This document shows positions 2,692 through 63,786 of a stretch of 64,000 bases of DNA, piece by piece. Both the position numbers and the translations under genes were made by a program. The DNA lies in the IMG/VR virus record IMGVR_UViG_3300036853_000446, positions 248,001 through 312,000 of that record, one strand, 5' to 3'. Every line of letters begins with the position of its first letter. The stretch's first letter is position 1. Under the pieces are notes generated by a model. That model was not told the DNA's origin. It did not search any database and saw only the letters and a list, made by a program, of their open reading frames with translations.

Positions 2692-2723
2692 ATCGGTTTC
2701 GCCATCAGCGTGTCGTGAATCTT

Positions 2724-11773: not shown

Positions 11774-12521
11774 GTCGTGGTCTGGCCTCTTAACTCGAAA
11801 GACGAGCCGTCGTTGATGGGGACATGCGCTGAGTCGTGGTTGGGTGGGCTCCACGCAGCCTCTCAAATGGTATCGAGGAGGACGTCCTTCTCGCTGAACC
11901 GTCGTGGTCTGGTGGGCTCCACGTAGCCTCTCAAATCCACCAGGACGGACAAGCGTCCCGAGTAGTCGGCGTGTCGTGGTTGGGTGGGCTCCACGCAGCC
12001 TCTGAAATCGTCGGGCGAATCGTGTCTCATGCCGACAAGGTACTCGTCGTGGTCGGGTGGGCCCCACGCAGCCTCTCAAATCCGTTGAGAGAAGTAGTGA
12101 CCACTCGGTGTGGGATCTCGTCGTGGTCTGGTGGGCTCCACGCAGCCTCTCAAATTTTTCCTAAGGAGCGAGCCGGCGAACTATCCTCCCCGTCGTGGTC
12201 GGGTGGGCCCCACGCAGCCTCTCAAATCAAGATACCGCTGGTGCGAGACATTGGTGATACGTGGTCGTGGTTAGGTGGGCTCCACGCAGCTTCTCAAAAT
12301 CCATGACGGCGTCAGCGGTTGGTGAGGGTCATCCTCAAGTCGTGGTTGGGTGGGCTCCACGCAGCCTCTCAAATCAGCCGCTCAAATTACGCACCTCGCC
12401 ACGCTGGTTCCGTCGTGGTCAGGTGGGCTCCACGCAGCCTCTCAAATTCTTGTAATCGCCTGCGAGCCGTCCAGCCGCGGGTTGCGTCGTGGTCTGGTGG
12501 GCTCCACGCAGCCGCTCAAAT
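11774..12521 (-). CRISPR. CRISPR array A2 (10 repeats plus 1 internally deleted trailer repeat)
   Basis: Repeats at 11833, 11901, 11973, 12046, 12120, 12192, 12264, 12339, 12412, 12486; degenerate copy 11774-11794. Confidence 0.97.
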
Positions 12522-17550: not shown

Positions 17551-18318
17551 ATCGTGGTCTGGTAAGGCTCCATACAGCCTCGCGAATAAGTTCACAGCTT
17601 GAAAGGTCAAGGACAGATCGGGTTGTCGTGGTTGGGTGGGCTCCACGCAGCCTCTCAAATCGGTCGCCTTTGACACGGGCATACTCATATCATGCTGCCA
17701 GTCGTGGTTGGGTGGGCTCCACGCAGCCTCTCAAATCCGAGCACCACCGCGTCGCGACGCGGAAGGTAGTGGGGTCGTGGTTGGGTGGGCTCCACGCAGC
17801 CTCTCAAATCGCAAGCCAAGGATGCACGTGCTACGGACGACCGCGTGTCGTGGTTGGGTGGGCTCCACGCAGCCTCTCAAATCAAGCTGGCGGAAGCTGC
17901 CGTTGACCACTCTTCTATCGTCGTGGTCGGGTGGGCTCCACGCAGCCTCTCAAATCTGAACCTCGAGTGGATGCTTAATGGACCGCTCATCGTCGTGGTC
18001 GGGTGGGCTCCACGCAGCCTCTCAAATCCAATGCGCGACGAGGCTCGTCACCTGCGTCGGATTGTCGTGGTTGGGTGGGCTCCACGCAGCCTCTCAAATT
18101 CGCCTCGAAGCAGTCGGCACTCGTATCGGATGCGCACGTCGTGGTCGGGTGGGCTCCACGCAGCCTCTCAAATTCTGCGCCTGCAGGTGCGGGCTACCGA
18201 TCACAGTGGCGTCGTGGTCGGGTGGGCTCCACGCAGCCTCTCAAATCCGTCAAGTCCTCGGCCCCGAGACGGAGGTTGTGCTGTCGTGGTCGGGTGGGCT
18301 CCACGCAGCCTCTCAAAT
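17551..18318 (-). CRISPR. CRISPR array A3 (10 repeats plus 1 degenerate trailer repeat)
   Basis: Repeats at 17625, 17701, 17774, 17847, 17920, 17992, 18064, 18138, 18211, 18283; degenerate copy 17551-17587. Confidence 0.97.
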
Positions 18319-31538: not shown

Positions 31539-32189
31539 ATGAAGAAGGAGATTTCCGACGAGCAGCTCTATACGACGATAGAGGGTATCAAGAAGCAGCT
31601 GGCCAAGCCACTCTCGAAGCTAGGCAAGGTCAGCCTGCAGAAGGGTACGAGCCTGGACCGAGCCATCAGGGTGAGGACTCCCCTGGGTTCGCATCTCAAT
31701 GTCGTCGTCCGCCACGAACACAGTGGTGGCTTCTCCTGTAAGCCGACCGGGCTGTACGCCGTCCTGGTACAAGAGGTGCGAACGGCCGACTCCAGAATCA
31801 AATATCGCGCTCGTGACTTCACGGGGCTCGCCCCCAAGCTGACCGAGAAGCAGGTCACGGACATCGTTGCCTGCGTGCAGAAGCATCTGGTTGCACAGAA
31901 CGAGCGGACTCGCGACGTAGATGCTCGAATCGCCGAGTCCGAGCACTCCGAGAAGGAGAAGGCGGCACGTGAAGCTGGTCTGCGCGCCACTCTCGAACGT
32001 CATGGTATCAAAGCAGGCGAGCTGAGCATCTACTGCGAGGGAGCGACTTTTAATGTGCGGCTCCGGCTCGAGGAAGACGAACTCGAGCAATTTCTGAAGT
32101 TCTGGAAGACGCGCGACCGCGGGTCACCAGTCCCCCAGGGAAGGCGTCGAGCGGAATTACCTTCTCGGGCCAAAAAGGCAACCAAATGA
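31539..32189 (+). CDS. hypothetical protein
   Basis: ATGA-coupled to the GHKL gene. Confidence 0.65.
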   Translation: MKKEISDEQLYTTIEGIKKQLAKPLSKLGKVSLQKGTSLDRAIRVRTPLGSHLNVVVRHEHSGGFSCKPTGLYAVLVQEVRTADSRIKYRARDFTGLAPKLTEKQVTDIVACVQKHLVAQNERTRDVDARIAESEHSEKEKAAREAGLRATLERHGIKAGELSIYCEGATFNVRLRLEEDELEQFLKFWKTRDRGSPVPQGRRRAELPSRAKKATK

Positions 32190-33649
32190 CTGAACCCGCC
32201 ATCATCGTCGACCGCCGTGGTCTTGCCAGTAAACTCGCAAACCGCCCTCGTGCATTCATCCTGAACGAGCTGCTGCAGAACGCCTGGGACGAGAACGTCA
32301 CGACGGTCCGCGCGACCGTCGAGCCCCTCCCGGGCAAGGCCCAGTGCCGGATCACGGTCGAGGACGACAGCCCCGAGGGTTTCTCCGACCTGACGAGCGT
32401 CTACACGATGTTCAAGCATTCGAAGAAAGCTCCCGACCCGACGAAGCGCGGCCGCTTCGAGATGGGTGAGAAGCTCGTGATCGCCCTGGCGCTCAGCGCT
32501 GAGGTCACATCGACCAAGGGCACGGTCATTTTTGACGAGGACGGTCGGCGCACGTCACGGGCGACACGCAAGGCGGGAACGGTCTTCACGGGCGTTTTCC
32601 GCATGACTCGCGAGCAATACATCGAGCTGATCGCTTCGGCAAAGATGTTGATCCCCCCGCCCGGCATCAAAACCTATCTTGACGGCGACCTGCTCCCGCC
32701 ACGAGAGGTTCTTCATTCTTTCGAGGCGACCCTACAGACGATCCGAGCGGACGCGGACGGCAATCTGGCGCCGACGCAGCGCAAGACGGCCGTCAACGTC
32801 TACGAGGTCCTCGAGGGCGAGACGGCGCACATCTACGAGATGGGCATCCCCGTCGTCGAGACCGGCGACCGCTGGCACTACGACGTCGAGCAGCGCGTCC
32901 CCGTCAATTGGGAACGCAACAACGTGCCGCCGGCATTCCTCAGGACGTTGCGCGTGGAGGTCCTCAACGCCATGCACTCGCGCCTCTCGGAAGACGAGTC
33001 TACCGCGGCCTGGGTGACCGAAGCGGCCGCCGACGGTCGCTGCGCGCCCGAGGCCATCACCACGGTCGTTCACCGCCGCTTCGGCGACAAGGTCGTGATC
33101 CACGACCCCTCCGACCCCGAGGGGACGAAGATTGCCGTCAGCCAAGGCTACACGGTCATCCCCGGCGGGGCCTTCTCGAAGGGCGCATGGGAGAACGTCA
33201 AGACATCCGGCGCCGCCCTCCCCGCGGGGCAGGTGACGCCGAGCCCCAAGCCTTACGATGAGAACGGACGGCCCGAGAACGTCATCCCGCCCTCAAAGTG
33301 GACCCCGGATATGTCGAGAATTGCGGCCTTTGCAGAGCACATCTTTTTAAGGCTCACCGGCAAGACCTGTCGCACGACGATCGTCAGGGAGCTGCAGGCG
33401 TCGTGGGCCGCCAATTTCGGGCCCACCGATGACGGGGGCTTTCGCCTTTGCCTAAATTACGGCCGGCTCGGCAAGAAGTGGTTTGCCCTGGCGAAACGTG
33501 ACGAGCGCGTGCTCGACTTGCTGCTCCACGAGTTCGTTCACTACGAGGTGAATGATCATCTGTCCAACGAGATGCACGAAGCGGCGACGAAGCTCGGCGC
33601 GCGTCTCGTGGGAATTGCCCTCGACGAACCCAATCTTTTCAACGACTGA
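32186..33649 (+). CDS. GHKL ATPase with C-terminal HExxH domain
   Basis: ELLQNAWD (N box), EDDSPEG (G1), RGRFEMGEK (G2), GT; LLHEFVH. Confidence 0.85.
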   Translation: MTEPAIIVDRRGLASKLANRPRAFILNELLQNAWDENVTTVRATVEPLPGKAQCRITVEDDSPEGFSDLTSVYTMFKHSKKAPDPTKRGRFEMGEKLVIALALSAEVTSTKGTVIFDEDGRRTSRATRKAGTVFTGVFRMTREQYIELIASAKMLIPPPGIKTYLDGDLLPPREVLHSFEATLQTIRADADGNLAPTQRKTAVNVYEVLEGETAHIYEMGIPVVETGDRWHYDVEQRVPVNWERNNVPPAFLRTLRVEVLNAMHSRLSEDESTAAWVTEAAADGRCAPEAITTVVHRRFGDKVVIHDPSDPEGTKIAVSQGYTVIPGGAFSKGAWENVKTSGAALPAGQVTPSPKPYDENGRPENVIPPSKWTPDMSRIAAFAEHIFLRLTGKTCRTTIVRELQASWAANFGPTDDGGFRLCLNYGRLGKKWFALAKRDERVLDLLLHEFVHYEVNDHLSNEMHEAATKLGARLVGIALDEPNLFND

Positions 33650-33661
33650 GAACGGTATCAA

Positions 33662-34036
33662 ATGAAGATGGAATTGACGAACGAGACGGGCTTCCGAGAT
33701 GATCTGATCCGCGCACTCATATACAGGGTCCTGGTCGTCATAGGCTACCGCCTGAAGGCCCACTCCCTTGAAGTCGAAGTTGTCCACAGCCGCAGTCATG
33801 GCGTGAGCGGTCGCGCCCGCGTTGGTACGAACCGAATCAAGCTCTACGTACCGAAGCCTCGCGCCTGGCGAAACGACACGTGGCGGCTAATCGTCGCCAC
33901 GGTTTTTCATGAGTGCCTGCACCTGGTGGGCGTCCGAGACGACGACATGATCGACGAGGTGCTGCGCGCCAACTTCCCGTTGCAAGCTTGGGCGAGAGAC
34001 TTGCAGCCCTTCTGTCGCGTCGCCCATCGGGTTTGA
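33662..34036 (+). CDS. small HExxH zincin-like protein
   Basis: VFHECLHLVG. Confidence 0.65.
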   Translation: MKMELTNETGFRDDLIRALIYRVLVVIGYRLKAHSLEVEVVHSRSHGVSGRARVGTNRIKLYVPKPRAWRNDTWRLIVATVFHECLHLVGVRDDDMIDEVLRANFPLQAWARDLQPFCRVAHRV

Positions 34037-34079
34037 CCCCACGAAACGCTCGAAGGAAAAGGCCGCTGAACGAAGTTCC

Positions 34080-34086
34080 CGGTGTA
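34080..34086 (+). promoter_or_regulatory. class-2 motif CGGTGTA
   Basis: 10 nt before GTG 34097. Confidence 0.55.
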
Positions 34087-34096
34087 ACGACGAGGG

Positions 34097-35092
34097 GTGA
34101 AACGGCGCCTCAAGGAAATCACCCCGAATATCCACAACGAAAAGCTGTTTGACTCGACGGACGAGAGCCTGGCTGAGCTGGGGCGCGACATCGAGCGGAA
34201 CGGGCTGCGGTGCCCGATCCGCATCACGAAAGTTGGTGCGGTCATCATCGATGGTGAGCGTCGGTGGCGTGTCTGCAAAAAACTCGGCTGGACCCTCATC
34301 GATGTCGTGGAGGAAGACGTCCACCGGAACGAAATTCTCGGTCTCCTCATCGACACCGTTTCACAGCAGCGGCACATGACGTTGATCGAGCAGGCCCGCG
34401 TTTACGCGACGTATTACAACCACCTAAAGAGAGCGCACCGGAAGGGCGATCTCAACCACATCGCGGCCAAGCAGATCGCACTCGAGAAAGCGCGACTGCC
34501 TTTCCGATCGGTGGCTCTCGCCGATCAACTCGTGCAAGTCGTCGACCGAGGCCACCCCGACCTGCATGAGAAATTGCTCCGCGGGGAGATGAGCATCACT
34601 GGGGCCTACGAGGCCATCCTGCGACGCTTGTATAAGCCCATGAAATACGAGCTACTCCCCCGCCCCGAGCGTACCCTCGAACAGCTCGCTCGAGCCAAGC
34701 GGCATGAAGACGAACGGCTCGAAAGGCAGGAAGAGCTGGAATTTACCCAGACTTACATTGATGCCCATCTGGATGACCTCGAATCGGTGGAGGCGCAACG
34801 AAGGCTGCTCGGACTGTTCGAGCCCGATCCGCCTCCCGCGGCGCTGAAATACCGAGACAACCCCGAGAGCCAAGTCATCGCAGAGGCCTTTGAGTCCCTG
34901 GCTGTGAAGGAGCCCCCCGAGCTGCTCGTTGGGCGCCTCACGATGTTCATCGAAGAGATCGCGGCGAGCGTCCAAGGCGTCGATGAGTCGCGCGCGCGGG
35001 ACATCGTTCGAGACGTGGTCAAGCCGATGGTCCTTCGTCTCGCGCAAGCCTTCCCGCGCCAGGAGTTCGAAGTCCCCGTCAATCGGGAATGA
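34097..35092 (+). CDS. ParB N-terminal domain protein
   Basis: LAELGRDIERNGLRCPI...IIDGERRWR. Confidence 0.85.
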   Translation: MKRRLKEITPNIHNEKLFDSTDESLAELGRDIERNGLRCPIRITKVGAVIIDGERRWRVCKKLGWTLIDVVEEDVHRNEILGLLIDTVSQQRHMTLIEQARVYATYYNHLKRAHRKGDLNHIAAKQIALEKARLPFRSVALADQLVQVVDRGHPDLHEKLLRGEMSITGAYEAILRRLYKPMKYELLPRPERTLEQLARAKRHEDERLERQEELEFTQTYIDAHLDDLESVEAQRRLLGLFEPDPPPAALKYRDNPESQVIAEAFESLAVKEPPELLVGRLTMFIEEIAASVQGVDESRARDIVRDVVKPMVLRLAQAFPRQEFEVPVNRE

Positions 35093-39782: not shown

Positions 39783-40031
39783 ATGACCTTAGAGAAGAGA
39801 GCTGCTGAGGCCCTGCGCAAGGGCGAGTGTCATAAGAAACCCTGTCCATCGAAGGCAAATGCCCTCAAACGAATCGAAAGCGGAAAGGCGGACGCGATGT
39901 CCGTCGACCCATATTCCATGGGCGAGGTGACCCTCATGAATCACTTTGCGATTCGGTTTCACGATCGAACACTCGGCGCGGCGGTTCGCAAGCTGACTCT
40001 TCGCGGCTTCGGACGCGGATCAAACGACTGA
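39783..40031 (+). CDS. hypothetical protein
   Basis: RBS AAGGAG. Confidence 0.55.
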   Translation: MTLEKRAAEALRKGECHKKPCPSKANALKRIESGKADAMSVDPYSMGEVTLMNHFAIRFHDRTLGAAVRKLTLRGFGRGSND

Positions 40032-40045
40032 CGTCGCCCGTACTC
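40017..40045 (+). promoter_or_regulatory. class-1 ECF-like promoter
   Basis: GGATCAAA-N-CCCGTACTC, ATG 40054. Confidence 0.75.
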
Positions 40046-40053
40046 GAAGCACG

Positions 40054-40335
40054 ATGACCCAAGACAAGATGACCGCAGTGGCCGAGCAACTACGAGCCCA
40101 AGGGCTCCGCGTCGCGGTCAAAAGAATCTACGCCTGCGTCGATGGCGTGGCCCGGGACGTCTACTCGCTAGACATCGACACCGGCCGCTTCGGCACGGCT
40201 AGCTGCACCGTTTTCGAGACCGAGATCGACGGTCTCGACGCCGCCAAGTTCGCAAAATCGCTGCGCGCCTCCGAGAAGAAAGCAGCACGTGCCAAGGCTG
40301 CCACCGCGTATTACACACGGTTTTTGCCGAAGTGA
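40054..40335 (+). CDS. hypothetical protein
   Basis: Start set by class-1 motif. Confidence 0.6.
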   Translation: MTQDKMTAVAEQLRAQGLRVAVKRIYACVDGVARDVYSLDIDTGRFGTASCTVFETEIDGLDAAKFAKSLRASEKKAARAKAATAYYTRFLPK

Positions 40336-40380
40336 AGGTCGGGCTGCGGCGGTTGGCTCCCCCAGGGGGTTGGCCGCGGC

Positions 40381-41064
40381 TCAAATGGCTTCACCGCTCG
40401 GTCGAAGCCCGGTGAGCGCCCCTAGGCCAGGTCTCGTTCTACGGGGCAGTTCCGCGGCAACGTCCCATGCGCTCCTCGAGTCCCCCTGTTCGAGCACGAT
40501 CACGATGGGCTCCGGGAGCGGTTCAATGGGCGCCCCCCACTCGAGAGTCCCGCCGCGCGCCTCACGAATCTCGGCGACGCGCCGCTCGACGTTGCGGGCC
40601 CAGACGGCCGTCGCCTCCTCCAGCGCCGCCTCCCGGGAGTGAAACGACTTGGTTCCCGTCTGAGGACGGGGCTTGCCGCTGCGCCGGAGCTTGGGGACGG
40701 CGGCGGGGTTGATGACGGGGGTGAGACGGCTCCCGAGGCCCAACCAGGCGAGCCAGGTGCCTCCCGTGGCTTCGGACGTGTGCCTCACGACGACGTACGC
40801 CTCCGGGGTGCCGAGCAGGAGGCAGCCCGCGTTCTCGACAGCCTTGGCGCCCCCCACGGACGCCGGGGCGACGTAGTTCCAGTCTCGCTCGGCTTCGGCA
40901 CGGGCTCGAGGCTCGCCCCCGTGCTCGTCACAGTAGGCGGAGACGGCGTCAGGGCGATTTCTGGGGCACCGGAGGCGGACCTCGACGGCGTCCCGCGGGC
41001 ACCACTCGTCTTCACCCAGCCATTCATTGCAATGGGTGCCACTGTGGGCAGCTCGCGTCCTCAT
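40381..41064 (-). CDS. hypothetical protein
   Basis: Last of four ATGA-coupled genes. Confidence 0.6.
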   Translation of the reverse strand: MRTRAAHSGTHCNEWLGEDEWCPRDAVEVRLRCPRNRPDAVSAYCDEHGGEPRARAEAERDWNYVAPASVGGAKAVENAGCLLLGTPEAYVVVRHTSEATGGTWLAWLGLGSRLTPVINPAAVPKLRRSGKPRPQTGTKSFHSREAALEEATAVWARNVERRVAEIREARGGTLEWGAPIEPLPEPIVIVLEQGDSRSAWDVAAELPRRTRPGLGALTGLRPSGEAI

Positions 41065-41270
41065 ACTTCTCCCGACTCCTTTCCACTCGAGGATTCAGAG
41101 AGCAAGATCTTACCCGTCGCGAGATTGCCTAGCCGGTAAATGCGCTCAGCCGCGCTGGTGACCCGCCATTTGCCACCGCAATCGTGTGACATGCCTTGAC
41201 GGCCCGGCGAAAATCCCGCGTCAATGTCGGCGACGACCTCACTGCACCGGTCACATGTGCTGTTCTTCAT
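41061..41270 (-). CDS. small zinc-ribbon protein
   Basis: CDRC...HDCGG. Confidence 0.55.
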   Translation of the reverse strand: MKNSTCDRCSEVVADIDAGFSPGRQGMSHDCGGKWRVTSAAERIYRLGNLATGKILLSESSSGKESGEV

Positions 41271-41653
41271 TGCATCCTCGCGTGTACGAGTCGGGCGATG
41301 TGAAGGGTCGATTCAACGTCGCCTCGGCGCGGAGCATGAATGATGGCCTCGGCACTCTCTAGTCCGCAAAGGTCGGTCAGGATTTCTCGACCGCGTCGCG
41401 ACCCGGCAGCCATTTCGAGATACTGGCGGCAATCTTCCACCGTGGCGGCGCATGCCGCGACGTTCGGCCGCTCGTGAGGCATGTCCCAGGGACCCTGCTC
41501 TTCGTGCCGACCATTGATGTTGCAGTGCCGGACAGCGCCGCAGCGGCAGTGCTCGGTGATCTTGACGTTCCCGTGCGCAGCAGGATTGTATTCGGCGCCG
41601 CTGATCGGCGCAGAAAAGGCGTGTGTATCCGAACGAAATACAACGTGACTCAT
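41267..41653 (-). CDS. hypothetical protein
   Basis: ATGA overlaps. Confidence 0.55.
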   Translation of the reverse strand: MSHVVFRSDTHAFSAPISGAEYNPAAHGNVKITEHCRCGAVRHCNINGRHEEQGPWDMPHERPNVAACAATVEDCRQYLEMAAGSRRGREILTDLCGLESAEAIIHAPRRGDVESTLHIARLVHARMQ

Positions 41654-41922
41654 GAAGATTCCTCGCTCGTCTCGATGGTCGCGGAGCACGGCTGCACGTC
41701 GTCATCCGACTCCGTGTCACTCCAGTCGGCGAGTTCGACCGTCGCGTAGCGGTAGTTGCCTGCGCCGGGCCGGTCCGTGTGGATCGGACCCTCGAACGAA
41801 CACACGCGATACAGCTCGCCATCGTCTCCCGGGACGAGGTCCCCAACGTCGGGGAACCCGTTGCCACGCTCGGTGATGGTTGCACGCGCGGTCTGCGAAA
41901 CGGCACAATTACGCTCATTCAT
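41650..41922 (-). CDS. small acidic protein
   Basis: RBS GGGAG; ATGA overlap. Confidence 0.55.
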   Translation of the reverse strand: MNERNCAVSQTARATITERGNGFPDVGDLVPGDDGELYRVCSFEGPIHTDRPGAGNYRYATVELADWSDTESDDDVQPCSATIETSEESS

Positions 41923-42159
41923 GATGTCAGGTCTCCCTGTGAGGACGCTGCGACCGGAGCCGCAACGTCGAGTAGAACCTAAAGATAGCATGGCTCTCTA
42001 GTGGGCGCCAGCGGGGCGGGCGGCCGGGGACTTACGCAATCGAGTCCAGGGTTCAAAAGGCTTCCCGGAGCTGCCTCGCGACCAAAGGCGAATCACGGTC
42101 ATTGTTTCCCTTCCCTTTGGATCCCGTCGGAGGCAAACTCGCACCCCATTGAGGGGTCA

Positions 42160-43602
42160 ATGGCAAAGAGGAAGTCAAAGACGACGAGTGTCCAGCCCGG
42201 TGAAGTGCTGAAGGGGTTTCGCGTCAAACTCAGACCGACCCAGGAGGATCTGCGTTACCTATCGACGGCTCAAGTCGAGCTGATGACGATGTGGAACATC
42301 CTCGTGATAACGTGGAAGACGCACGTCGATTACTGCGTTCGGCATTGCGAGGACCTCGGGCTCATCGGACCCGTACCGCCACGACCGACCTCGGACCAAG
42401 ACACGAACGTGCCCGAAGAGATCGCCGAATGGGAGGAGTACGCGGCACTCTGCCGTGAACGCCGCCGAAGCGCTCGCGAGCAGTGTAAGACCGTCGAGGG
42501 TCTGACACGGCGCGACTGGGCGAATCGAGCCCTCGATTACCACCAACTTGATCTCACGGAGAAGGCTCGAGAGCAGACGCAGATCGATTACCGCGTCCTG
42601 CGGTCCGCCGTGAAGGGCGTCACGACGGCCCATATGGCCCAGGCCGTCATCGAGACTTACAAGGCGTCATTGCAGAAAGGGCGGCCGCCACCGAAGCTCA
42701 AGAGACGCCCGCTCGAGATGCCTCTCTTGCTTCGCAGCGGTAAGGATTTGCTTACGCTTTCAGCGAACCACTCCACCCGAACGACGGCGTCCGGGAAGAA
42801 GCGGCTCACCGGCTCCCACCACTGCATCGTCAAGTTTGGCCCGCTCAAGATCGGGGGACGATTCAACCGCCCGCCGTCGGGTCCCTTCCTCCAGGGCATT
42901 TCGATCGGGCTCGAGAAGGACGGCTGGTACGCCTCCGCGAAGGTCCGGACCCTACCTGAGGATCTGCCGAAGCCAACGAAGGAAATCATCGCGATCAACC
43001 CGGGACTCGAATGCCTCTACGCCGACAATGAGGGTTATGTGATCGAGAACCCACGGGGCAACGCTTACTCCCTCCGGATGCGCGAGATGAGCGATTGGAT
43101 CGACGACGCCGAAACCCAGTGGGACGAAGCCCACCGTCGCAACCATCAAGCTCGATATGCCGAGCGTTTCGCGCGGCACACGGAGGACCTCATCTACAGC
43201 CGCATCCTCCCGAAGCTCGCCGATTACGAGACGATTCTCATCGGCAAGGCCGGCAAAACCGCCGCTCAAGGTCGACAAAACCGCATCAGTAAGAACGACG
43301 AGGGCGGCTACGTTTCGGCCATGAGCTTGATGCAGCAGCTCATCATCCAGAGGTATGGCCTCTATGACCCCGACGAGAATCCGACGGGGCGAGTGCGAGT
43401 GCTGGAGTCCATGGGAATTTCCCGGAGGTGCTCGCGTTGCGGAACCGAGCACGCAACCCGTTATCAACGCAACAATTTACGCCGGTATGACCAACAGACC
43501 GATTGCCAGGAACCCTCGTGTCGGCTCAAGATACACGTCGATGTTGGCGCCGCTCGCAACCTGCTTTCCAACTATCGGGATTTGCAGGCGGCAGCAGAAT
43601 GA
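42160..43602 (+). CDS. compact type V (TnpB/Cas12-like) effector with inactivated RuvC, 480 aa
   Basis: TnpB-like GFRVKLRPT, PKLKRR, GWYAS; RuvC-I IIAINPG (D->N), RuvC-II TILIGK (E->G), Zn finger CSRC...CQEPSC, RuvC-III HVDVGAARNL; RBS GAGGGG; array 2 nt downstream. Confidence 0.88.
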   Translation: MAKRKSKTTSVQPGEVLKGFRVKLRPTQEDLRYLSTAQVELMTMWNILVITWKTHVDYCVRHCEDLGLIGPVPPRPTSDQDTNVPEEIAEWEEYAALCRERRRSAREQCKTVEGLTRRDWANRALDYHQLDLTEKAREQTQIDYRVLRSAVKGVTTAHMAQAVIETYKASLQKGRPPPKLKRRPLEMPLLLRSGKDLLTLSANHSTRTTASGKKRLTGSHHCIVKFGPLKIGGRFNRPPSGPFLQGISIGLEKDGWYASAKVRTLPEDLPKPTKEIIAINPGLECLYADNEGYVIENPRGNAYSLRMREMSDWIDDAETQWDEAHRRNHQARYAERFARHTEDLIYSRILPKLADYETILIGKAGKTAAQGRQNRISKNDEGGYVSAMSLMQQLIIQRYGLYDPDENPTGRVRVLESMGISRRCSRCGTEHATRYQRNNLRRYDQQTDCQEPSCRLKIHVDVGAARNLLSNYRDLQAAAE

Positions 43603-43604
43603 CC

Positions 43605-44869
43605 CTCAGAACGGCAGCGTGGTGCCTACCCTCCCACGACGAGGAGTTCGGTGGCCGCGCGCGATGATGTGCAAGACCTCAGAACGGCAGCGTGGTGCCT
43701 ACCCTCCCACGACACGAGGTCGGAAAGAGTCTCAATCTCGGCAATCTCACGCTCAGAACGGCAGCGTGGTGCCTACCCTCCCACGACGACCTGCGGAAGA
43801 AGGGCCTTCGCCGATCTACTTGGGCTCAGAACGGCAGCGTGGTGCCTACCCTCCCACGACGAAGTGACGTCTACCAATTGGGCTTGGTCCTCTATCACTC
43901 AGAACGGCAGCGTGGTGCCTACCCTCCCACGACTTATGGGGATGAACCGAGAACCAGCCTCGATCGATGTCTCAGAACGGCAGCGTGGTGCCTACCCTTC
44001 CACGATAGCCGCGTCCTCCAAACTGCCGAATCGATTCCGAAACTCAGAACGGCAGCGTGGTGCCTACCCTCCCACGACGGCATCTCCACTCGTTCCCTCG
44101 TCCTCCGGGTATGGACCTCAGAACGGCAGCGTGGTGCCTACCCTCCCACGACTACGGCTGGCGGTCCCCCGCCAAACGAGGTTGGCGTGCTCAGAACGGC
44201 AGCGTGGTGCCTACCCTCCCACGACGAAACATCACGCGCCTGGGCAACAGCATCAGCGTCGCCATCTCAGAACGGCAGCGTGGTGCCTACCCTCCCACGA
44301 CCAACGACATGACCCCGTGGAACCTGTGAGCTTGCTCGGCGCTCCTCGGAACGGCAGCGTGGTGCCTACCCTCCCACGACGGAAAGACTCGTTCGTGATC
44401 CCGAGTCGACCCCCATGCTCAGAACGGCAGCGTGGTGCCTACCCTTCCACGACGAGGAGTTCGGTGGCCGCGATGGTGATGCGCAAGCCCTCAGCATGGC
44501 AGCGTGGTGCCTACCCCTCCACGACTTCGAGCAACACGTCAACGCGCGTATTGGCTCGTTCAGCCTCAGAGTGGCAGCGCGGTGCCTACCCTTCCGCGAC
44601 ACGTCCCCCAGTTAGCGGAAAGCCTCGGTACTGGTCTCAGAATGGCAGCGTGGTGCCTACCCTTCCACGACCACATCCGTGGATAGAGAGTCCCCCTCCG
44701 GAGTCAACCTCAGAACGGCAGCGTGGTGCCTACCCTTCCACGACTTTCCGATCTCGTTAAAGTAGATGCGGACTTATGGCAGCGTGGTGCCTACCCTTCC
44801 ACGACGTGCACGGGTCTTCTCAAAGAAAGACGCCTCAGAACGGCAGCGTGGTGCCTACCATTCCACGAC
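43605..44869 (+). CRISPR. CRISPR array B (18 repeats, 17 spacers)
   Basis: 36-nt CTCAGAACGGCAGCGTGGTGCCTACCCTYCCACGAC at 43605, 43678, 43752, 43825, 43898, 43971, 44043, 44117, 44190, 44266, 44345, 44418, 44490, 44565, 44636, 44709, ~44770 (5'-degenerate), 44834; decay increases away from the gene. Confidence 0.98.
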
Positions 44870-45157
44870 CCAATGCTCATAGATGGCAGACGCCACAGGC
44901 TTACAGAACTGGCTAGGCTTCCCCGATCTCAACGCGCTGGACATAGCTCGCGTCGTCGCTCATCCAGACAGCGATTGCCTCTCCGTTGTCGAGACGCTGG
45001 TAGACGTGGAGTTCGAGGCGAAAATCGAATTCCAGGACGCCGCCCTCGACGTCTTCCTCCGCATAGTCCCACCATTCGGCCATGCTCTTTTGTCGGGCGG
45101 AGCCGACGGCAGTTGCGTGGCCGACGGCCGGCTTTGCGGAGTTTTTGTCGATCGGGA

Positions 45158-45478
45158 TTAGAGCGCCCGCAGGGAACTCTTTAGTTCGGAGAGGACCTGC
45201 TCCGCTCGATCCAAGCCCACTCGAATTACTAGGGTTCGCAGCTGCTCGTCTGTGGACGATCCCTTGGAGGATGGCTGCGTCTCGTCTCGCCGCTGGATCT
45301 CCTGGGTCCCATTCCCCGTTTCCTTCTTCTTGTCCGCGGCGCGGATATTGTAGACATGGCCTGCCGTTAGAGCCATTCCCTGCTTTTTTGCTGCGCTGAC
45401 AAGCTCTTGGGCCGACAGGTTAGGGTTTGAGCGAACGAAGGCTGCTTTAGCACCGAGTTGTAGTTTCCTGCGAGGCAT
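45158..45478 (-). CDS. small basic DNA-binding-like protein, paralog of 37881-38363
   Basis: GAKAAFVRS...AKKQGMALTAGHVYNIRA. Confidence 0.7.
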   Translation of the reverse strand: MPRRKLQLGAKAAFVRSNPNLSAQELVSAAKKQGMALTAGHVYNIRAADKKKETGNGTQEIQRRDETQPSSKGSSTDEQLRTLVIRVGLDRAEQVLSELKSSLRAL

Positions 45479-45626
45479 GGTGGGTAAGACTACCACTTTT
45501 TGCTGCTGCGAGTGAAGGGTCTCTTTACTCCGCCGGGCCGCGGTGCGGTGAGCCTCTCATAGGTACCTTTGCAACGCCTCAAGCCCGCCTCGCCAACCAA
45601 CCAACAGGAGGCAGGCAGTACTCCCG

Positions 45627-45902
45627 CTAACGCGCGCCGCCGTCCGTCTCGGGTCCACGCTTCGCTTCCTCGAGTCGGCGGAGCAGCTCGTCCCCACTGT
45701 CGGCCGTAATCGTCACGTCGTGCCGGCTGATGCAGAGTCCCCAATCCTCACACGTCCGGTGCACGGCCGAATCTGAGAAGCCTTTCTTGAAGAAGACTGC
45801 TTTGACGTCCTCGACGGTGGGGTTCTCGGGCGCGTCTTTTTCTGGCCAGATTTCTTCGATCGTGAACGAATCACAAACATAAATATCGATCCTGAACTTC
45901 AT
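45627..45902 (-). CDS. hypothetical protein
   Basis: EEIWPEKDAPENPTVEDV. Confidence 0.55.
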   Translation of the reverse strand: MKFRIDIYVCDSFTIEEIWPEKDAPENPTVEDVKAVFFKKGFSDSAVHRTCEDWGLCISRHDVTITADSGDELLRRLEEAKRGPETDGGAR

Positions 45903-45975
45903 GACTGCGACTACACCGCCGGGCTCTTGTTCTGATTTTTGGTTTGACTTATGCTGCACGGGCTCTTCTCGGCGC

Positions 45976-46160
45976 GGTTGAGAGGCTGCGTGGAGCCCAC
46001 CCAACTACGACGGTATCATTCGGCTTTTTATCAGGTCCCCCGATCCGGAGTAACTTGCGAGGCTGCGTGGAGCCCACCCAACTACGATATGCCCGTGCCG
46101 ACGTGGCGCTTCCAAGAAAGGTACATTTGAGAGGCTGCGTGGAGCCCATCACACCACGAC
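45976..46160 (+). CRISPR. CRISPR mini-array A4 (3 family-A repeats)
   Basis: Repeats at 45976, 46053, 46125 in the ATTTGAGAGG...CCACGAC orientation. Confidence 0.9.
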
Positions 46161-46250
46161 TTGCTTGGATCGTTGACTTGATAGGTTTTCAACCCTGATG
46201 ACAGGCTTGCACCGATGAACCCGGTTGGCTCGACCCCAAACCCGGGTAAC

Positions 46251-46286
46251 GATGAAATGGCAGCGTGGTGCCTACCCTTCCACGAC
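46251..46286 (+). repeat. orphan family-B CRISPR repeat
   Basis: GATGAAATGGCAGCGTGGTGCCTACCCTTCCACGAC, 3' 28 nt match repeat B. Confidence 0.85.
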
Positions 46287-46348
46287 GGATCTACGGGCGA
46301 GGCGACCGCAACAGCTACCCCAAGACCAAGAGCGGCTTCGGGATTTGC

Positions 46349-46693
46349 TCACGGCGCTGGCTTTTTAATCGGCCCCGAAACGATGGCCTCTCGAAGGCTC
46401 TCGGCGAGCGCCGTGCTCGGACTTGGCATCGGCCTCGGAATGGCCCACGTCCGAGGAGCCTCGACCTGCTCGACCTTGTCGCCGTGCAGGTCGTAGACCT
46501 CCATCACCTTGGTCATCGCGACGTCGCTCTCGTAGTCTTGGGCGATCTGGTGGACGGTTTTCTCTCCATCCGCCATCACGTAGACAGGGAAATCCGTCCA
46601 GTCGAATTTGTCCGTTACGATAATCATGAAGGCCGCGCCTCGCGTAAGGCCTTCCTCGAACCATAATGAGAGCTGTTCTCGAGTAGTGCTCAT
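46349..46693 (-). CDS. phage-type hypothetical protein
   Basis: MIIVTDKFDWTDFPVYV...VMEVYDL. Confidence 0.65.
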   Translation of the reverse strand: MSTTREQLSLWFEEGLTRGAAFMIIVTDKFDWTDFPVYVMADGEKTVHQIAQDYESDVAMTKVMEVYDLHGDKVEQVEAPRTWAIPRPMPSPSTALAESLREAIVSGPIKKPAP

Positions 46694-46749
46694 CAAACGG
46701 CTTAGCCCCCGTCCCATTCTCCACCAGATGATCCCAAGGATGCAAGTCG

Positions 46750-47292
46750 TCAGTCATTCAGCCAGGACATGAAATCATCATCATCTTCCGACTCGGGTCC
46801 CTCGTCTGATTCTCGAGCCTCCGCGGGATCCCGCAGGAAATCCTTCCCGGCCATCGTGACGCGCAGCAACGTCGTCTGGTTCTCCGCGCTCGGATCCCAC
46901 ACGTACGCGGCGGCCACTTTCTCGAGGCCCTTACGCCACCGACCGCGAACCAGGACGCCGGGTCTGTCACCGTTCGACCACTGTTCATACCACTCGAAAC
47001 ACGCGCCCGGGGCCAACATCAAGATGTCGGCGTACCGCCCTCTCGACGTCTTCCGCCTCTCGCCTGTTGTCACGAGGATCCCGGCTTGACGAAGATTCGT
47101 GATCCGAGCCGAAATCGTGTTGTAGCGCTCGCCGCCGAGCAGGTTGAAGGCTTCATCGCAGGTGAAGTTGCCACCCTGATAGAGCACGATGATCCTCTTG
47201 ACGTCGTCATGATCGCTCGTGAGGGATTCGGCAGCGGCCTTGCTGGTCTCGCTATCTTTGATGTAGGGGATCCGTTTTTTATTCTCAGTCAT
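46750..47292 (-). CDS. winged-HTH protein
   Basis: FTCDEA...TISARITNLRQAGILVTTGERRKTSRGRYA. Confidence 0.75.
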   Translation of the reverse strand: MTENKKRIPYIKDSETSKAAAESLTSDHDDVKRIIVLYQGGNFTCDEAFNLLGGERYNTISARITNLRQAGILVTTGERRKTSRGRYADILMLAPGACFEWYEQWSNGDRPGVLVRGRWRKGLEKVAAAYVWDPSAENQTTLLRVTMAGKDFLRDPAEARESDEGPESEDDDDFMSWLND

Positions 47293-49340: not shown

Positions 49341-51872
49341 ATGCTCAGAGAGTCAGGGGCAGCTCGCGCGAGGGACTGTGCACCCTCAAGTGCCGTCCAC
49401 CGCACCGCTAAAACAGAGCCCGTTGTCATTCAGTGCTTTGAGGCACCGTGCGGGACACGACCACATAACCTGCCGAAACGAAAAGGAAAGGATAAAGCGT
49501 ACGTCCCGAACAGGTCGCAGCGTGCCAGCTACACAGCCCTGGATGGTCAACTCCTTTGTATACTTACCAAGCCAACGGGTAGCGGAAAAACCATTGACAT
49601 CCTAACACTTGCACTGAGCGACCTCGCAAAGCCCGACGGACGAAAACAGGTCGTCATCTACTCGATGACGGACATCGGTCCTGGCTTCGGTGGCCCAGGA
49701 AGGCAGGAGGGCCCCATCACGATCGACGTTCCGGGGCATGGGCTCATGACCTGGACCCCGATTTGTGCCTCTGAACAGACCGTCGAAACGATCATCAACT
49801 TCTTGCGACGGCGCCCCGCCAAGGATCGCAGTCAGCGCATGCTCATCTGCACCCACCTTGCTCTGGTGCTGGCTCACGAGGAAATGCTGCGACGTGGTTA
49901 TAAGCGCCCCTTCAAAAAAACCTCACTCTACATAGACGAGTGCCACCACATCTGCTGGGACATGTCGAGTGGCACAGCCGTCACGAACGGCCTCGGTAAG
50001 ATCGTTTCCCATTACTACGAGTGCCGGCCCGGCAAGCTCGTGCTTGCCACTGCCACGTTCATGCGCCCTGACGGGCAGGTCATCCCGCCCGAGTATCGCG
50101 ACAAATTCGCCGCCTACGAGCTTCCGATGCATGAGCACCTTGCATCGATGCCGCACCTGAAGGGGATACGCTTCCACTTCGTGATGGCGTCCGCTGTCGA
50201 GGCTGTTGAGACGATCATCGGGGGAGACCCTCATCGCCCGACGCTAATGTGGTTGCCAAACAACGTGATCGGCAGCGCCAAGGCGCCTTATGTCAAGCGC
50301 TTGGTCGACGCTACACCTGACTGTATTCGCGACCGAATTTACGACTTCACGGATGACGAGCAGGTGTCCGAGATTCGAGAGCGCTTTCACCGGCTCAAAC
50401 TGGACCCTGTCGAGTACCCGTGCCTTGGGATTGCCCTGCGTCGGTTGCTCGAGGGAGTTGACTCACCTATGGCGAGCCGCGGGATCATCCTCGGGCTTCG
50501 CGGTATCCGGGACATCATCCAGATGGTCGGGCGCTTTATCCGCGACTTAGAAGGCAAGCCGTATGCTGATATCTACATCGTCGTCGACCCTCCCTCCGAA
50601 GACGAAGCAGACGTTGTCGAGCACCTCGAGGACAATCTCTCCGCCATCTTCATTGCGATGATCGCGGGGTGGCAGTACGGCCCGGCCCGCAAGCCCCGGA
50701 ACAAGGCGGAGCGGGATCTCGCCGAGAAGGTGGGTAAGATTCTCAGCAACCCGGAAGCAACCACCGTAGTGCTAAACGCAATCGCGAGCGCGGTCGCCCG
50801 TCACGCTGACGGTGAGCCGGAGCAACTCAGCGCCGGCATGCACGAATCCATGCGTCGACTGGCAGAAGAGCGACCGGACCTCGCGGACATGAAGGACCCT
50901 GCGGTTCGGTCACGACTCGTCGAGGACGTCGACGAAAGAATGGCAGGACCTGCTGCCGAAGCCGAGAAGAAGCTGAAATACAAGATCCCGGGGCTCAAGG
51001 GAGCGCGAGATCTGACTGGGCTCAAGTTGACGGCTGAGCAAGGTCTTGCTCGCAACATCACGGTCCTCGGCTTCACGTGCGGCGCGCGCAGCATGAAGAT
51101 GATGAGGGAGAGTTTAGCGTCGGATACAATTGAACTCGTATACGAAGATGTGCGAGAAGCCGCCCTCCGATGGTGGGAAGCAACCGGTAAGTTCCCCCAC
51201 GCGGGAATGGTGGGCGTAGTGGTTGATATCGGAGGCCGTCAGCATTGCTGGCGTCAGGTCAACGGCTGGCTGAGCCGGCACTGCAGCTCGTCCTTGGGCA
51301 AACTCAGAATCGAGTGCACGGGCAACCTCGGCAGGGGTCTGATTCCGTATGATCTAGTCGCAGAGGAGGCATCTGAATACCGGGCCCGGACCGGTGAGTG
51401 GCCTCGAATTAAATCGGGACCCCTCGCTCGATTGCGTACTACGTGGGAGACACTATACCAAAAGTTCATTCGGGAAGGCACTAGCCTGGAAGACTTTTTG
51501 GAATCCAGGTTCGGGCCCTTGCGACTGAGACACTTCGACACCTATGACGAATGGCGAAAACACGCACTGGATGCAAACGTCGGTTGTCATACGGACTATC
51601 AGAGAGCGCGCGGTGAGTCTCGCATTGACAGCCGATTCCCCTCAAATCCGCGAGATTATTACGGTGCCGGGTGGAAGGGGTGGCCAAAAGACCGCAAGGT
51701 CTCACGTGGTGAAAGCCATGGATGCGCAAAGTTGTCCGATGCATCGATCAAGCGAATGCGAAGGCGATTTAAGCAGCGTTTCACAAAGCGCGCCGTCGCC
51801 GAAGAGTTTGGTGTCTCCATCTCAACCGTCAAGCTCATCAAGTCTGGGCGCATTTGGGCACACGTGAAGTGA
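49341..51872 (+). CDS. SF2 helicase with C-terminal DNA-binding modules
   Basis: KPTGSGKT, IDECHH, ATAT, LLEGVD, IQMVGRFIR; CGGTGTA at 49307-49313. Confidence 0.85.
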   Translation: MLRESGAARARDCAPSSAVHRTAKTEPVVIQCFEAPCGTRPHNLPKRKGKDKAYVPNRSQRASYTALDGQLLCILTKPTGSGKTIDILTLALSDLAKPDGRKQVVIYSMTDIGPGFGGPGRQEGPITIDVPGHGLMTWTPICASEQTVETIINFLRRRPAKDRSQRMLICTHLALVLAHEEMLRRGYKRPFKKTSLYIDECHHICWDMSSGTAVTNGLGKIVSHYYECRPGKLVLATATFMRPDGQVIPPEYRDKFAAYELPMHEHLASMPHLKGIRFHFVMASAVEAVETIIGGDPHRPTLMWLPNNVIGSAKAPYVKRLVDATPDCIRDRIYDFTDDEQVSEIRERFHRLKLDPVEYPCLGIALRRLLEGVDSPMASRGIILGLRGIRDIIQMVGRFIRDLEGKPYADIYIVVDPPSEDEADVVEHLEDNLSAIFIAMIAGWQYGPARKPRNKAERDLAEKVGKILSNPEATTVVLNAIASAVARHADGEPEQLSAGMHESMRRLAEERPDLADMKDPAVRSRLVEDVDERMAGPAAEAEKKLKYKIPGLKGARDLTGLKLTAEQGLARNITVLGFTCGARSMKMMRESLASDTIELVYEDVREAALRWWEATGKFPHAGMVGVVVDIGGRQHCWRQVNGWLSRHCSSSLGKLRIECTGNLGRGLIPYDLVAEEASEYRARTGEWPRIKSGPLARLRTTWETLYQKFIREGTSLEDFLESRFGPLRLRHFDTYDEWRKHALDANVGCHTDYQRARGESRIDSRFPSNPRDYYGAGWKGWPKDRKVSRGESHGCAKLSDASIKRMRRRFKQRFTKRAVAEEFGVSISTVKLIKSGRIWAHVK

Positions 51873-52297
51873 GACAACGCCAGGCGAAGTCCAATGGAAC
51901 GAGCGTTCCCACTCGCGTCCTGACCTGGTACCTCGCCACGAGCGCGAAAGGTGGCACCGTCGACGACTGCTCTCGCTCTCTGGGGCTCGCGAATCAGTCG
52001 GTGTCGGGGGCGGTGACACGGCTCACGAACGCCGGCAAGCTGTCAAAGACCGACCTCACGCGCAGCACTCGACTGAAGCGCCCGGCAGCCGTCTACGTCC
52101 ACAGCAAATTCGCAAAGGGCCCGTCCAATGCGAACAAGGCCGAAGCTTCCCGAGCTGAAGCCGCTCGGGAAGCAAGAGTCCTCCAACTCTTCCGGCAGTA
52201 TGTGGAGGCTCGGAAGAAGGCAGGGAAGGACGAGCGGGCGATCCAGCGGGCGCTCATGCGGTTAATGAAAGGGCTGGCGGTCGAGGCGGAGCGTTAA
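51869..52297 (+). CDS. winged-HTH protein (same pattern as 46750-47292)
   Basis: GTVDDCSRSLGLANQSVSGAVTRLTNAGKL...TRSTR...AAVY. Confidence 0.7.
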   Translation: MRQRQAKSNGTSVPTRVLTWYLATSAKGGTVDDCSRSLGLANQSVSGAVTRLTNAGKLSKTDLTRSTRLKRPAAVYVHSKFAKGPSNANKAEASRAEAAREARVLQLFRQYVEARKKAGKDERAIQRALMRLMKGLAVEAER

Positions 52298-63636: not shown

Positions 63637-63786
63637 ATTTCAGAGGCTGCGTGGAGCCCGCCCAACCACGACTCATTCAATCGGCAGAACTTGGTTCAAA
63701 TATGAAGGGCTGCGTGGAGCCCACCCAACCACGACAAGATTCACGACACGCTGTGAGAGGCCGCGTGGAGCCCACCCAACCACGAC
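63637..63786 (+). CRISPR. CRISPR mini-array A5 (3 family-A repeats, short spacers)
   Basis: Repeats at 63637, 63700, ~63751; spacers 27 and 15-18 nt; AT-rich upstream with TACAAT at 63604-63609. Confidence 0.9.

Follow-up and report, generated by a model that had tools for sequence, protein, structure and literature searches.

The DNA analyzed here, a stretch of 64,000 nucleotides (nt) that we call the window, covers positions 248,001 to 312,000 of the 407,634-bp IMG/VR virus record IMGVR_UViG_3300036853_000446 and carries a CRISPR array, array B, beside the gene of a compact effector with the TnpB/Cas12 fold. We show that two spacers of this array, spacers 1 and 12, come from one site of a conserved DUF4062/NIR gene, directly 3' of the TTY triplet that encodes its Phe68, and that spacer 12, and by extension spacer 1, originates in a DUF4062 gene of a defense island. 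Work from 2026 showed that DUF4062 (NIR) is a TIR-like NADase and acts in the abortive-infection defense of Swarozyc, Vulcan, Vesta, and Avs (bioRxiv 10.64898/2026.05.01.722283, 10.64898/2026.09.04.749371). The explanation that we favor, with moderate confidence, is that a nuclease-dead effector and array B, by way of two captures adjacent to a TTY protospacer-adjacent motif (PAM), silence a host DUF4062 NADase gene; the phage probably switches this defense gene off and does not cut it. The features on which the argument draws are the following:

42160 to 43602, + strand: effector gene, encoding a 480-amino-acid (aa) protein of the TnpB/Cas12 fold; the open reading frame (ORF) is open from a GTG at 42001, and the likely start is the ATG at 42160 (M54)
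43605 to 44869, + strand: CRISPR array B, in which a 36-nt repeat occurs 18 times with 17 spacers in between
43641 to 43677, + strand: spacer 1, 37 nt, with its head at 43641-43659 and its tail at 43660-43677
44454 to 44489, + strand: spacer 12, 36 nt, which reads in frame (EEFGGRDGDAQA) and is identical at 33/36 positions to L090:7348-7383
44565 to 44600, + strand: repeat copy 14, in which two changes in the pseudoknot compensate each other (T to C in the loop, A to G in the tail)

Spacers 1 and 12 share a head and differ in their tails

Array B is a CRISPR array whose spacers are unique except for the pair 1/12, mostly 35-40 nt long, with one of 43 nt and a final two of 25 and 28 nt. The repeat period is 71-79 nt across most of the array and 61-64 nt in the last two units, and the repeats are degenerate from 44490 onward. 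The original prediction had given the positions and sequences of spacers 1 and 12 correctly, as we found on recheck, and its central observation, an identical first 19 nt followed by a related and diverged remainder, was borne out: the 19-mer occurs exactly twice in the window against 0.05 expected, and the two tails agree at 12/17 aligned positions with one 1-nt gap, a score equaled by 71 of 20,000 tail shuffles. When all 46 spacers of the window's arrays were compared pairwise, every other pair shared 9 nt or fewer.

The two spacers also differ in frame. At nt 20-22 spacer 1 reads 'CGC' where the alleles described below have 'AT', which leaves its tail 1 nt longer than the coding allele, out of frame, and with an in-frame TGA. 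A Logan contig from a soil run equals 43612-43706 without differences, so that the CG run of spacer 1 was reproduced by a second assembler; the run probably holds the source sample's own reads and is thus a check on the assembler and no second sample. This junction could mean that the source allele was frameshifted, or that the CG run slipped once the spacer had been acquired. Taken alone, a spacer pair from one protospacer is an ordinary finding.

The same phenomenon was seen behind an effector of 61% identity, at L108:6784-6817 and L108:6907-6938, where two spacers have the same first 17 nt and different tails; that array is degenerate, and clearly different repeat variants precede the two spacers.

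The shared site lies in a conserved DUF4062 gene of a defense island

We scanned metagenomes with the common 19-mer and obtained at least 100 matches, most of them by chance. At three loci (L090, L011, and L032) homologous genes contain the 19-mer in corresponding codons, with TTC or TTT ahead of it, and at L090 the match reaches into the tail of spacer 12, giving 33/36 identities with mismatches at spacer nt 23, 27, and 35. In the protospacer search that the original prediction had called for, spacer 12 was matched in a DUF4062 gene, and among the matches listed an exact protospacer was found for neither spacer.

These matches could be a coincidence, the 19-mer being GC-rich and present in many genes without relation to one another, with the true source of the spacers elsewhere. 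In favor of this, at least 97 of the 100 metagenome matches listed, one viral match, and two genome matches lie in unrelated contexts, and no exact protospacer is known. However, only the DUF4062 matches extend into the tail (14/17 ungapped at L090, expected about 1e-5 per match by chance), they have TTY directly upstream and the 19-mer in the same codons, and the in-frame translation of spacer 12 follows the consensus of the family, so we give coincidence very little credence. The viral match, the single one in IMG/VR (L001), has no extension into the tail, and the two matches to the 19-mer preceded by TTY in GTDB representative genomes are likewise chance. Array B had no match in GenBank phages, arrays B, A2, and A3 had none in PLSDB plasmids, and viral contigs scanned for the two repeat cores, for the spacer 2 head, and for the head common to the L108 pair gave no match. 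Comparing all spacers with the phage contig and all fetched loci gave neither self-targets nor cross-targets.

The target gene encodes a protein of about 389 aa with the Pfam domain PF13271 (DUF4062), which is recorded for all 120 listed homologues; more than 500 homologues were found in total, some on contigs of 3.8-6.0 Mb. The closest allele among the matches listed, L090 (gene at L090:7144-8313), lies in a defense island. On a 58-kb contig the gene lies between McrBC and a BREX-like cluster (PglZ, BrxC, PglX-type methylase), and no mobility genes were seen within 10 kb of it. The protospacer corresponds to codons E69-D80, in the conserved stretch F-E-x-F-G-G-R-D-A-D-P-x-D, where F68, E69, F71, G72, and R74 are invariant and the 120 homologues have no indels; the identical 19 nt encode the invariant motif E-x-F-G-G-R. 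Directly 5' of the protospacer stands the codon of Phe68, which is TTC or TTT in each of the six alleles examined; this fits a Cas12-type 5' PAM, at a single site whose TTY is also a conserved Phe codon. Each spacer has the sense sequence of the gene, so a guide made from it would pair with the template strand.

Residues 37-127 of the target align to the DUF4062 domain of KpSwz (PDB 10wc, E = 0.002). The invariant E114 of the target aligns with the Ala of the KpSwz E97A construct, the position of E97 being a hand count of the chain numbering. We considered and rejected the idea that the protospacer covers the catalytic Glu, as the residue mutated in KpSwz aligns at E114 and the site spans E69-D80. 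With the full target model as query, Foldseek retrieved EF-Tu-like and TIR-APAZ matches but not KpSwz.

The genomic setting of this family bears on whether the spacers are aimed at a competing mobile element (a plasmid, an integrative element, or a phage) that carries a DUF4062 gene, and not at the host chromosome. Competition between elements is the usual role of Cas12m and type IV systems, type V-M systems have been described as plasmid-competition tools (PMC11656645), defense islands often lie on mobile elements, and an effector homologue, P0012, sits on a plasmid-like contig with a type IV secretion system (T4SS) from the same sample as one copy of the target contig. Against this, the DUF4062 family occurs on the 3.8-6.0 Mb contigs, a pattern-based scan found no member of it in IMG/VR contigs, the arrays were without matches in GenBank phages (array B) or PLSDB plasmids, and the 10 kb around the target on the 58-kb contig held no mobility genes; a mobile-element target therefore seems to us quite improbable. 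The phage contig itself has no DUF4062 target gene, and 401 genomes from the phylum of the Acidimicrobiia metagenome-assembled genome behind L102 gave three weak or partial matches to the target family, none of them over the site.

Natural alleles reproduce the head and tail pattern

We compared the spacers with three further alleles of the target (L115, L116, and L119), chosen by protein similarity alone. All have the TTY triplet, with 0, 3, and 3 mismatches to the head (nt 1-19) and 8, 9, and 8 to the tail (the next 17 nt). Overall, natural target alleles differ at 0-3 positions within nt 1-19 and at 8-10 positions within nt 20-36. The tails of spacers 12 and 1 are closest to L090, at 3 and 5 mismatches, compared with 8-10 for the other alleles, which argues that both spacers come from one allele lineage. 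Because natural alleles conserve the head and vary in the tail, allelic variation explains an identical head with a diverged tail, and two captures at one PAM from related alleles would look like spacers 1 and 12, a reading that these data support. The original prediction had offered 'two alleles at one PAM' as one of two options, and this one is supported: both spacers start right after an invariant Phe codon (TTC/TTT) of the DUF4062 gene, spacer 12 is in frame, and the mismatches of natural alleles fall where the two spacers differ.

The other option, that only the first ~19 nt function as guide, is not needed to explain the pair, since the target gene itself yields the head and tail pattern. 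A short guide is nevertheless plausible in view of the 17 bp of Cas12m2, the persisting spacers of 15-28 nt, the L108 pair, and the out-of-frame spacer 1. It is also part of a different account of the pair, in which a spacer unit gained a second copy in its own array, or reached another array by recombination, and its PAM-distal half then decayed, the guide being only the first ~17-19 nt. In favor of such a duplication, the frame of spacer 1 is lost exactly from nt 20-22, and slippage in a CG run is easier in an unconstrained array than in a conserved target gene without indels in 120 homologues. Old-end spacers of 15-28 nt are followed by an intact stem and pseudoknot, the L108 pair has a common 17-nt head and different tails, and the phage's arrays hold common material (18 nt after a repeat, at 2723 on the - strand and 63736 on the + strand). 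Heteroduplexes of 17 bp in Cas12m2 and 12 bp in TnpB (PMC10442227) point the same way. However, the asymmetry of head and tail is already present in natural alleles, so that decay is unneeded; the tail of spacer 12 is in frame with consensus-like residues; the spacers alongside are not duplicated; and spacer 1 sits at the usual entry position of new spacers. Moreover, a divergence of about 30% in 18 nt would be reached too slowly when the flanking repeats agree at 35/36 positions, unless the repeats were homogenized. We thus regard duplication and decay as unlikely and retain two captures at one PAM as the origin of the pair.

A conserved stem and pseudoknot set the orientation of the array

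An alignment of 17 repeat variants, taken from the window and from L108 and L110, supports a 4-bp stem (nt 9-12 with 19-22) together with a 5-bp pseudoknot in which nt 14-18, the hairpin loop, pair with nt 30-34. Across the alignment 98.7% of cells are paired, against 33-51% in slid controls, and five of the nine pairs show compensatory changes, among them the double change of repeat copy 14. The pseudoknot ends 2 nt before the spacer. These data show that array B is transcribed on the + strand and that each guide is the spacer following its repeat on the 3' side, because the effector lies on the same strand, the repeats degenerate from 44490, the pseudoknot ends close to the spacer, and the PAM falls on the head side. 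The original prediction had proposed this orientation, and the same arrangement of effector and array in six loci, the degenerate repeats at the far end, and the covarying pseudoknot all agree with it. A search for an anti-repeat (trans-activating CRISPR RNA) over 40000-47000 produced nothing convincing, and single-strand minimum-free-energy folds of repeat plus spacer were no better than shuffles, a method that is blind to pseudoknots.

Separately, units at the old ends of arrays (44745-44833, 63673-63750, and L108:6592-6930) keep the stem and pseudoknot with spacers of 15-28 nt, and they have lost or replaced the distal part of the spacer and the first ~8 nt of the next repeat. These units fit a functional module composed of repeat nt 9-36 and the spacer head.

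The effector belongs to a rare subclade and is predicted to be nuclease-dead

The effector ORF ends 3 nt before the first repeat of array B and is the single candidate effector gene in the whole 407-kb contig; a search of the contig with NF040570 gave no match, but it missed the known effector too and is therefore uninformative. Hidden Markov model matches to TnpB, Cas12u2, Cas12u3, and Cas12f are weak, and only about 14 close homologues were found among 5.8 billion proteins, several of them with the Cas12f/TnpB Zn-ribbon Pfam domain. The AlphaFold (AF2) model, with a predicted local distance difference test (pLDDT) score of 75.9, matched TnpB, Cas12f, Cas12p, Fanzor2, and Cas12m with a Foldseek probability of 1.0 at 10-16% identity. 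The protein thus has what defines a type V effector by fold, namely a TnpB-like fold, a conserved CxxC...CxxxxC ribbon, and an adjoining array. All six effector homologue loci for which DNA was available (L105-L110) have a same-strand CRISPR array downstream, immediately or after ~260 nt. Owing to this fold match and the same-strand arrays in every fetched locus, we consider the protein a genuine CRISPR-associated type V-like effector of a rare, unclassified subclade.

The RuvC D-E-D triad is not intact in this subclade. The Asp of RuvC-I is replaced by Asn280, and Asn (I-N-P/A-G-L) stands at this position in 12/13 members and in the nearest representatives, aligned to the Asp of G-I-D-P-G-L in Fanzor2. 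RuvC-II has no conserved Glu, its position being Gly, Ser, Ala, or Asp, and D461, the RuvC-III Asp, is retained, as is the Zn ribbon. In the wider family the canonical motifs G-I-D-V-G-L, V-E-E/D-L, and D-R-D-x-N-A-A-R-N are intact (profile search, ~50 full-length clusters, E < 1e-30). As two of the three catalytic residues are lost in exactly the array-linked subclade, the effector is, judging by its sequence, most likely a nuclease-dead DNA binder.

Two homologues extend the picture of the family. The most distant array-linked homologue (L110:10001-11788, 54% identity) is followed by a different 36-nt repeat, in which stem, loop, and 3' tail co-vary and preserve the stem-pseudoknot architecture; its contig carries a phage integrase. 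P0012 (52% identity) lies on a 21-kb contig with the T4SS genes VirB8, TrbL, TrbI, and CagX and a topoisomerase, and this contig and one copy of the DUF4062 target contig come from the same Joint Genome Institute (JGI) metagenome sample, 3300041965; the contig of L090 occurs in this sample and in 3300078620. The effector family is borne by plasmid-like elements as well as phages.

A proposed silencing of a host NADase gene

Under the explanation that we favor, two independent captures at one 5'-TTY PAM would have drawn on two related alleles of the L090 lineage, with spacer 1 assumed to be newer than spacer 12 because it stands at the non-degenerate end beside the effector gene. The effector and the arrays would be expressed early in infection, and CRISPR RNAs (crRNAs) would guide the nuclease-dead effector to the template strand within the host NADase gene, where it would bind DNA without cutting and block transcription, as Cas12m and TldR do. 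With the NADase gene silenced, the abortive-infection response would be weakened. Either spacer would recognize many alleles if pairing of ~17-19 bp suffices, the head being conserved. We put forward only tentatively the further idea of a natural CRISPR interference ('CRISPRi') counter-defense, in which several arrays, a PAM formed by an invariant Phe codon, a 19-nt motif that hardly varies, and a guide of ~17-19 nt that covers many alleles would make the silencing hard to escape by mutation.

Several points weigh against this explanation. A target was identified for one pair among the 46 spacers, so that 'counter-defense' rests on a single site, and the best protospacer among the matches listed is the 33/36 match of spacer 12, neither spacer having an exact one. 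Spacer 1 has 13 nt where all alleles have 12 and cannot be an intact in-frame allele. The predicted loss of nuclease activity comes from alignment, and relatives such as Fanzor2 have rearranged catalytic sites. The sequencing runs that hold the locus are two DNA runs, with no RNA run among them to give crRNA ends or expression. No link was established between the phage sample and the sample of L090. Finally, the 407-kb record yielded neither Cas1 nor Cas2 to account for the acquisition of spacers.

If the explanation is true, array B would be one of few documented examples in which a phage directs a CRISPR array at an innate-immunity gene of its host, here from a family whose anti-phage role was first shown in 2026. 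The spacer target would also serve as a host-linking marker for an uncultured huge phage, the head and tail pattern offers a testable handle on the guide length of the effector, and the effector itself would be a natural Cas12-like DNA binder of very small size (435-480 aa) whose crRNA is simple.

The phage record and its other arrays

The record has a GC content of 60.5% and a CheckV completeness of 86%. It contains PHROG matches to tail-fiber, baseplate, and helicase proteins and 30 clustered tRNA genes, all on one strand, at contig positions 140248-164650, outside the window. Such a cluster is typical of huge phages. The record represents a huge soil phage. Six arrays or mini-arrays lie in the window and belong to two related repeat families, A and B; besides array B they include:

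2724 to 2980, - strand: family-A array of 4 copies
11833 to 12521, - strand: family-A array of 10 copies
17552 to 18318, - strand: family-A array of 11 copies, with the same stem and pseudoknot and one stem pair flipped from A-U to U-A
45976 to 46286, + strand: three degenerate family-A repeats (45976-46160) and a solitary family-B repeat (46251-46286)
63637 to 63786, + strand: mini-array of three family-A-like repeats, with spacers shortened to 27 and 15 nt

An identical 18 nt follows a repeat at 2706-2723 (- strand, past the last repeat of the 2724-2980 array) and at 63736-63753 (+ strand), about 61 kb apart; in the second copy the spacer is cut to 15 nt, and the common sequence runs into the next repeat. 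This suggests that the arrays of the phage are related by duplication or recombination, with loss of spacer tails. Positions 45551-45570 form a 20-nt inverted match (90%) with 46117-46136, which comprises the end of a spacer and the first 12 nt of a family-A repeat, and could be either a short anti-repeat or what is left of an array fragment that was inverted.

Two groups of neighboring genes were also noted. At 49341-52297 (+ strand) the window encodes an 843-aa SF2-helicase-like protein (Walker A TKPTGSGKT, DECHH) with a weak match to a dnd restriction enzyme domain. This protein and a 147-aa winged-helix-like protein have counterparts with 61-65% identity in L106 and L107, encoded by a gene pair that lies directly upstream of the effector there (L106:6237-9205 in the former). 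The pair reflects either synteny conserved among phages or a module accessory to the system. At 32186-35092 (+ strand) lie a 487-aa protein with a weak sacsin-like ATP-binding match, a short ORF, and a 331-aa ParB/Noc-like protein, which may be a partition or nucleoid-related phage module.

Comparison with known systems

The system behind the spacer pair is a variation on known kinds and less ordinary than the pair itself. One close parallel is Cas12m (type V-M; PMC10442227, PMC11013384), likewise a compact TnpB-derived effector on mobile elements with the first RuvC Asp replaced. Cas12m2 silences its targets through a 17-bp heteroduplex, with a TTN PAM and a pseudoknot scaffold that pairs nt -22 to -17 with -8 to -3 (PMC10442227). 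The present system has a similar 36-nt repeat scaffold, in which stem and pseudoknot stop ~2-3 nt short of the guide, and a candidate PAM of the 5'-TTN type; binding and silencing, predicted for the present effector from the alignment, would be a further likeness. However, Cas12m proteins have ~600 aa as opposed to 435-520 aa here, the Cas12m2 site is His-Asp-Asp where the present subclade has Asn and no Glu, and the Cas12m target is a plasmid or phage gene, whereas the target identified here is a cellular defense gene. By sequence the effector does not belong to the Cas12m family: a profile search against PDB sequences gave no match to Cas12m with E up to 10, and in Foldseek Cas12m ranked 19-27 at 10-11% identity, no better than Cas12f or TnpB. 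The PADLOC match to Cas12f (E = 0.004) covers the Zn ribbon only, with a structural similarity no better than that to TnpB.

The nuclease-dead TldR proteins (PMC10705468, PMC13418256) are likewise phage-borne, RNA-guided TnpB descendants, and the repression that they exert is proposed here. TldR uses one fixed, adjacent omega-RNA-like guide against flagellin or opp promoters, in contrast to the multi-spacer arrays with a crRNA-type pseudoknot repeat found here, which follow the effector gene in all loci.

On the target side, the gene resembles the Swarozyc, Vulcan, Vesta, and Avs-NIR proteins in its N-terminal DUF4062/NIR domain, its invariant Glu (hand-counted E97), its composition as a single gene with a C-terminal auxiliary domain, and its place in a defense island. 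Only the NIR domain aligns between the target and KpSwz, and the C-terminal beta-rich domain of the target has no shown match to the Swarozyc AUX domain, HEAT repeats, or VstA. In the literature that we searched, with limited coverage, there was no paper on a phage CRISPR spacer against a DUF4062/NIR gene or on this effector subclade.

Huge phages are known to carry CRISPR systems without adaptation genes, spacers that target host genes, and a 'dCas14' (PMC7162821). The phages of Al-Shayeb et al. 2020, like the present one, exceed 200 kb and have compact arrays without Cas1, Cas2, or Cas4, spacers against bacterial chromosomal genes, and an effector that lacks a catalytic residue and was proposed to be a repressor. 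Their targets serve transcription and translation, with sigma-70 and glycyl-tRNA synthetase genes as examples, whereas the target here is a putative anti-phage NADase gene and the effector belongs to a separate rare subclade. The type I-F system of the Vibrio phage ICP1, directed against the PLE island, is also a phage CRISPR system that acts as counter-defense against an anti-phage element of the host (PMC11656645), but it is a complete, nuclease-active class 1 system with adaptation genes that destroys PLE DNA, while the present phage has a single class 2 effector, predicted to be nuclease-dead, and no adaptation genes. If confirmed, the system described here would extend the precedents of ICP1 against PLE and of 'dCas14' to the programmable silencing of NAD-depleting abortive infection.

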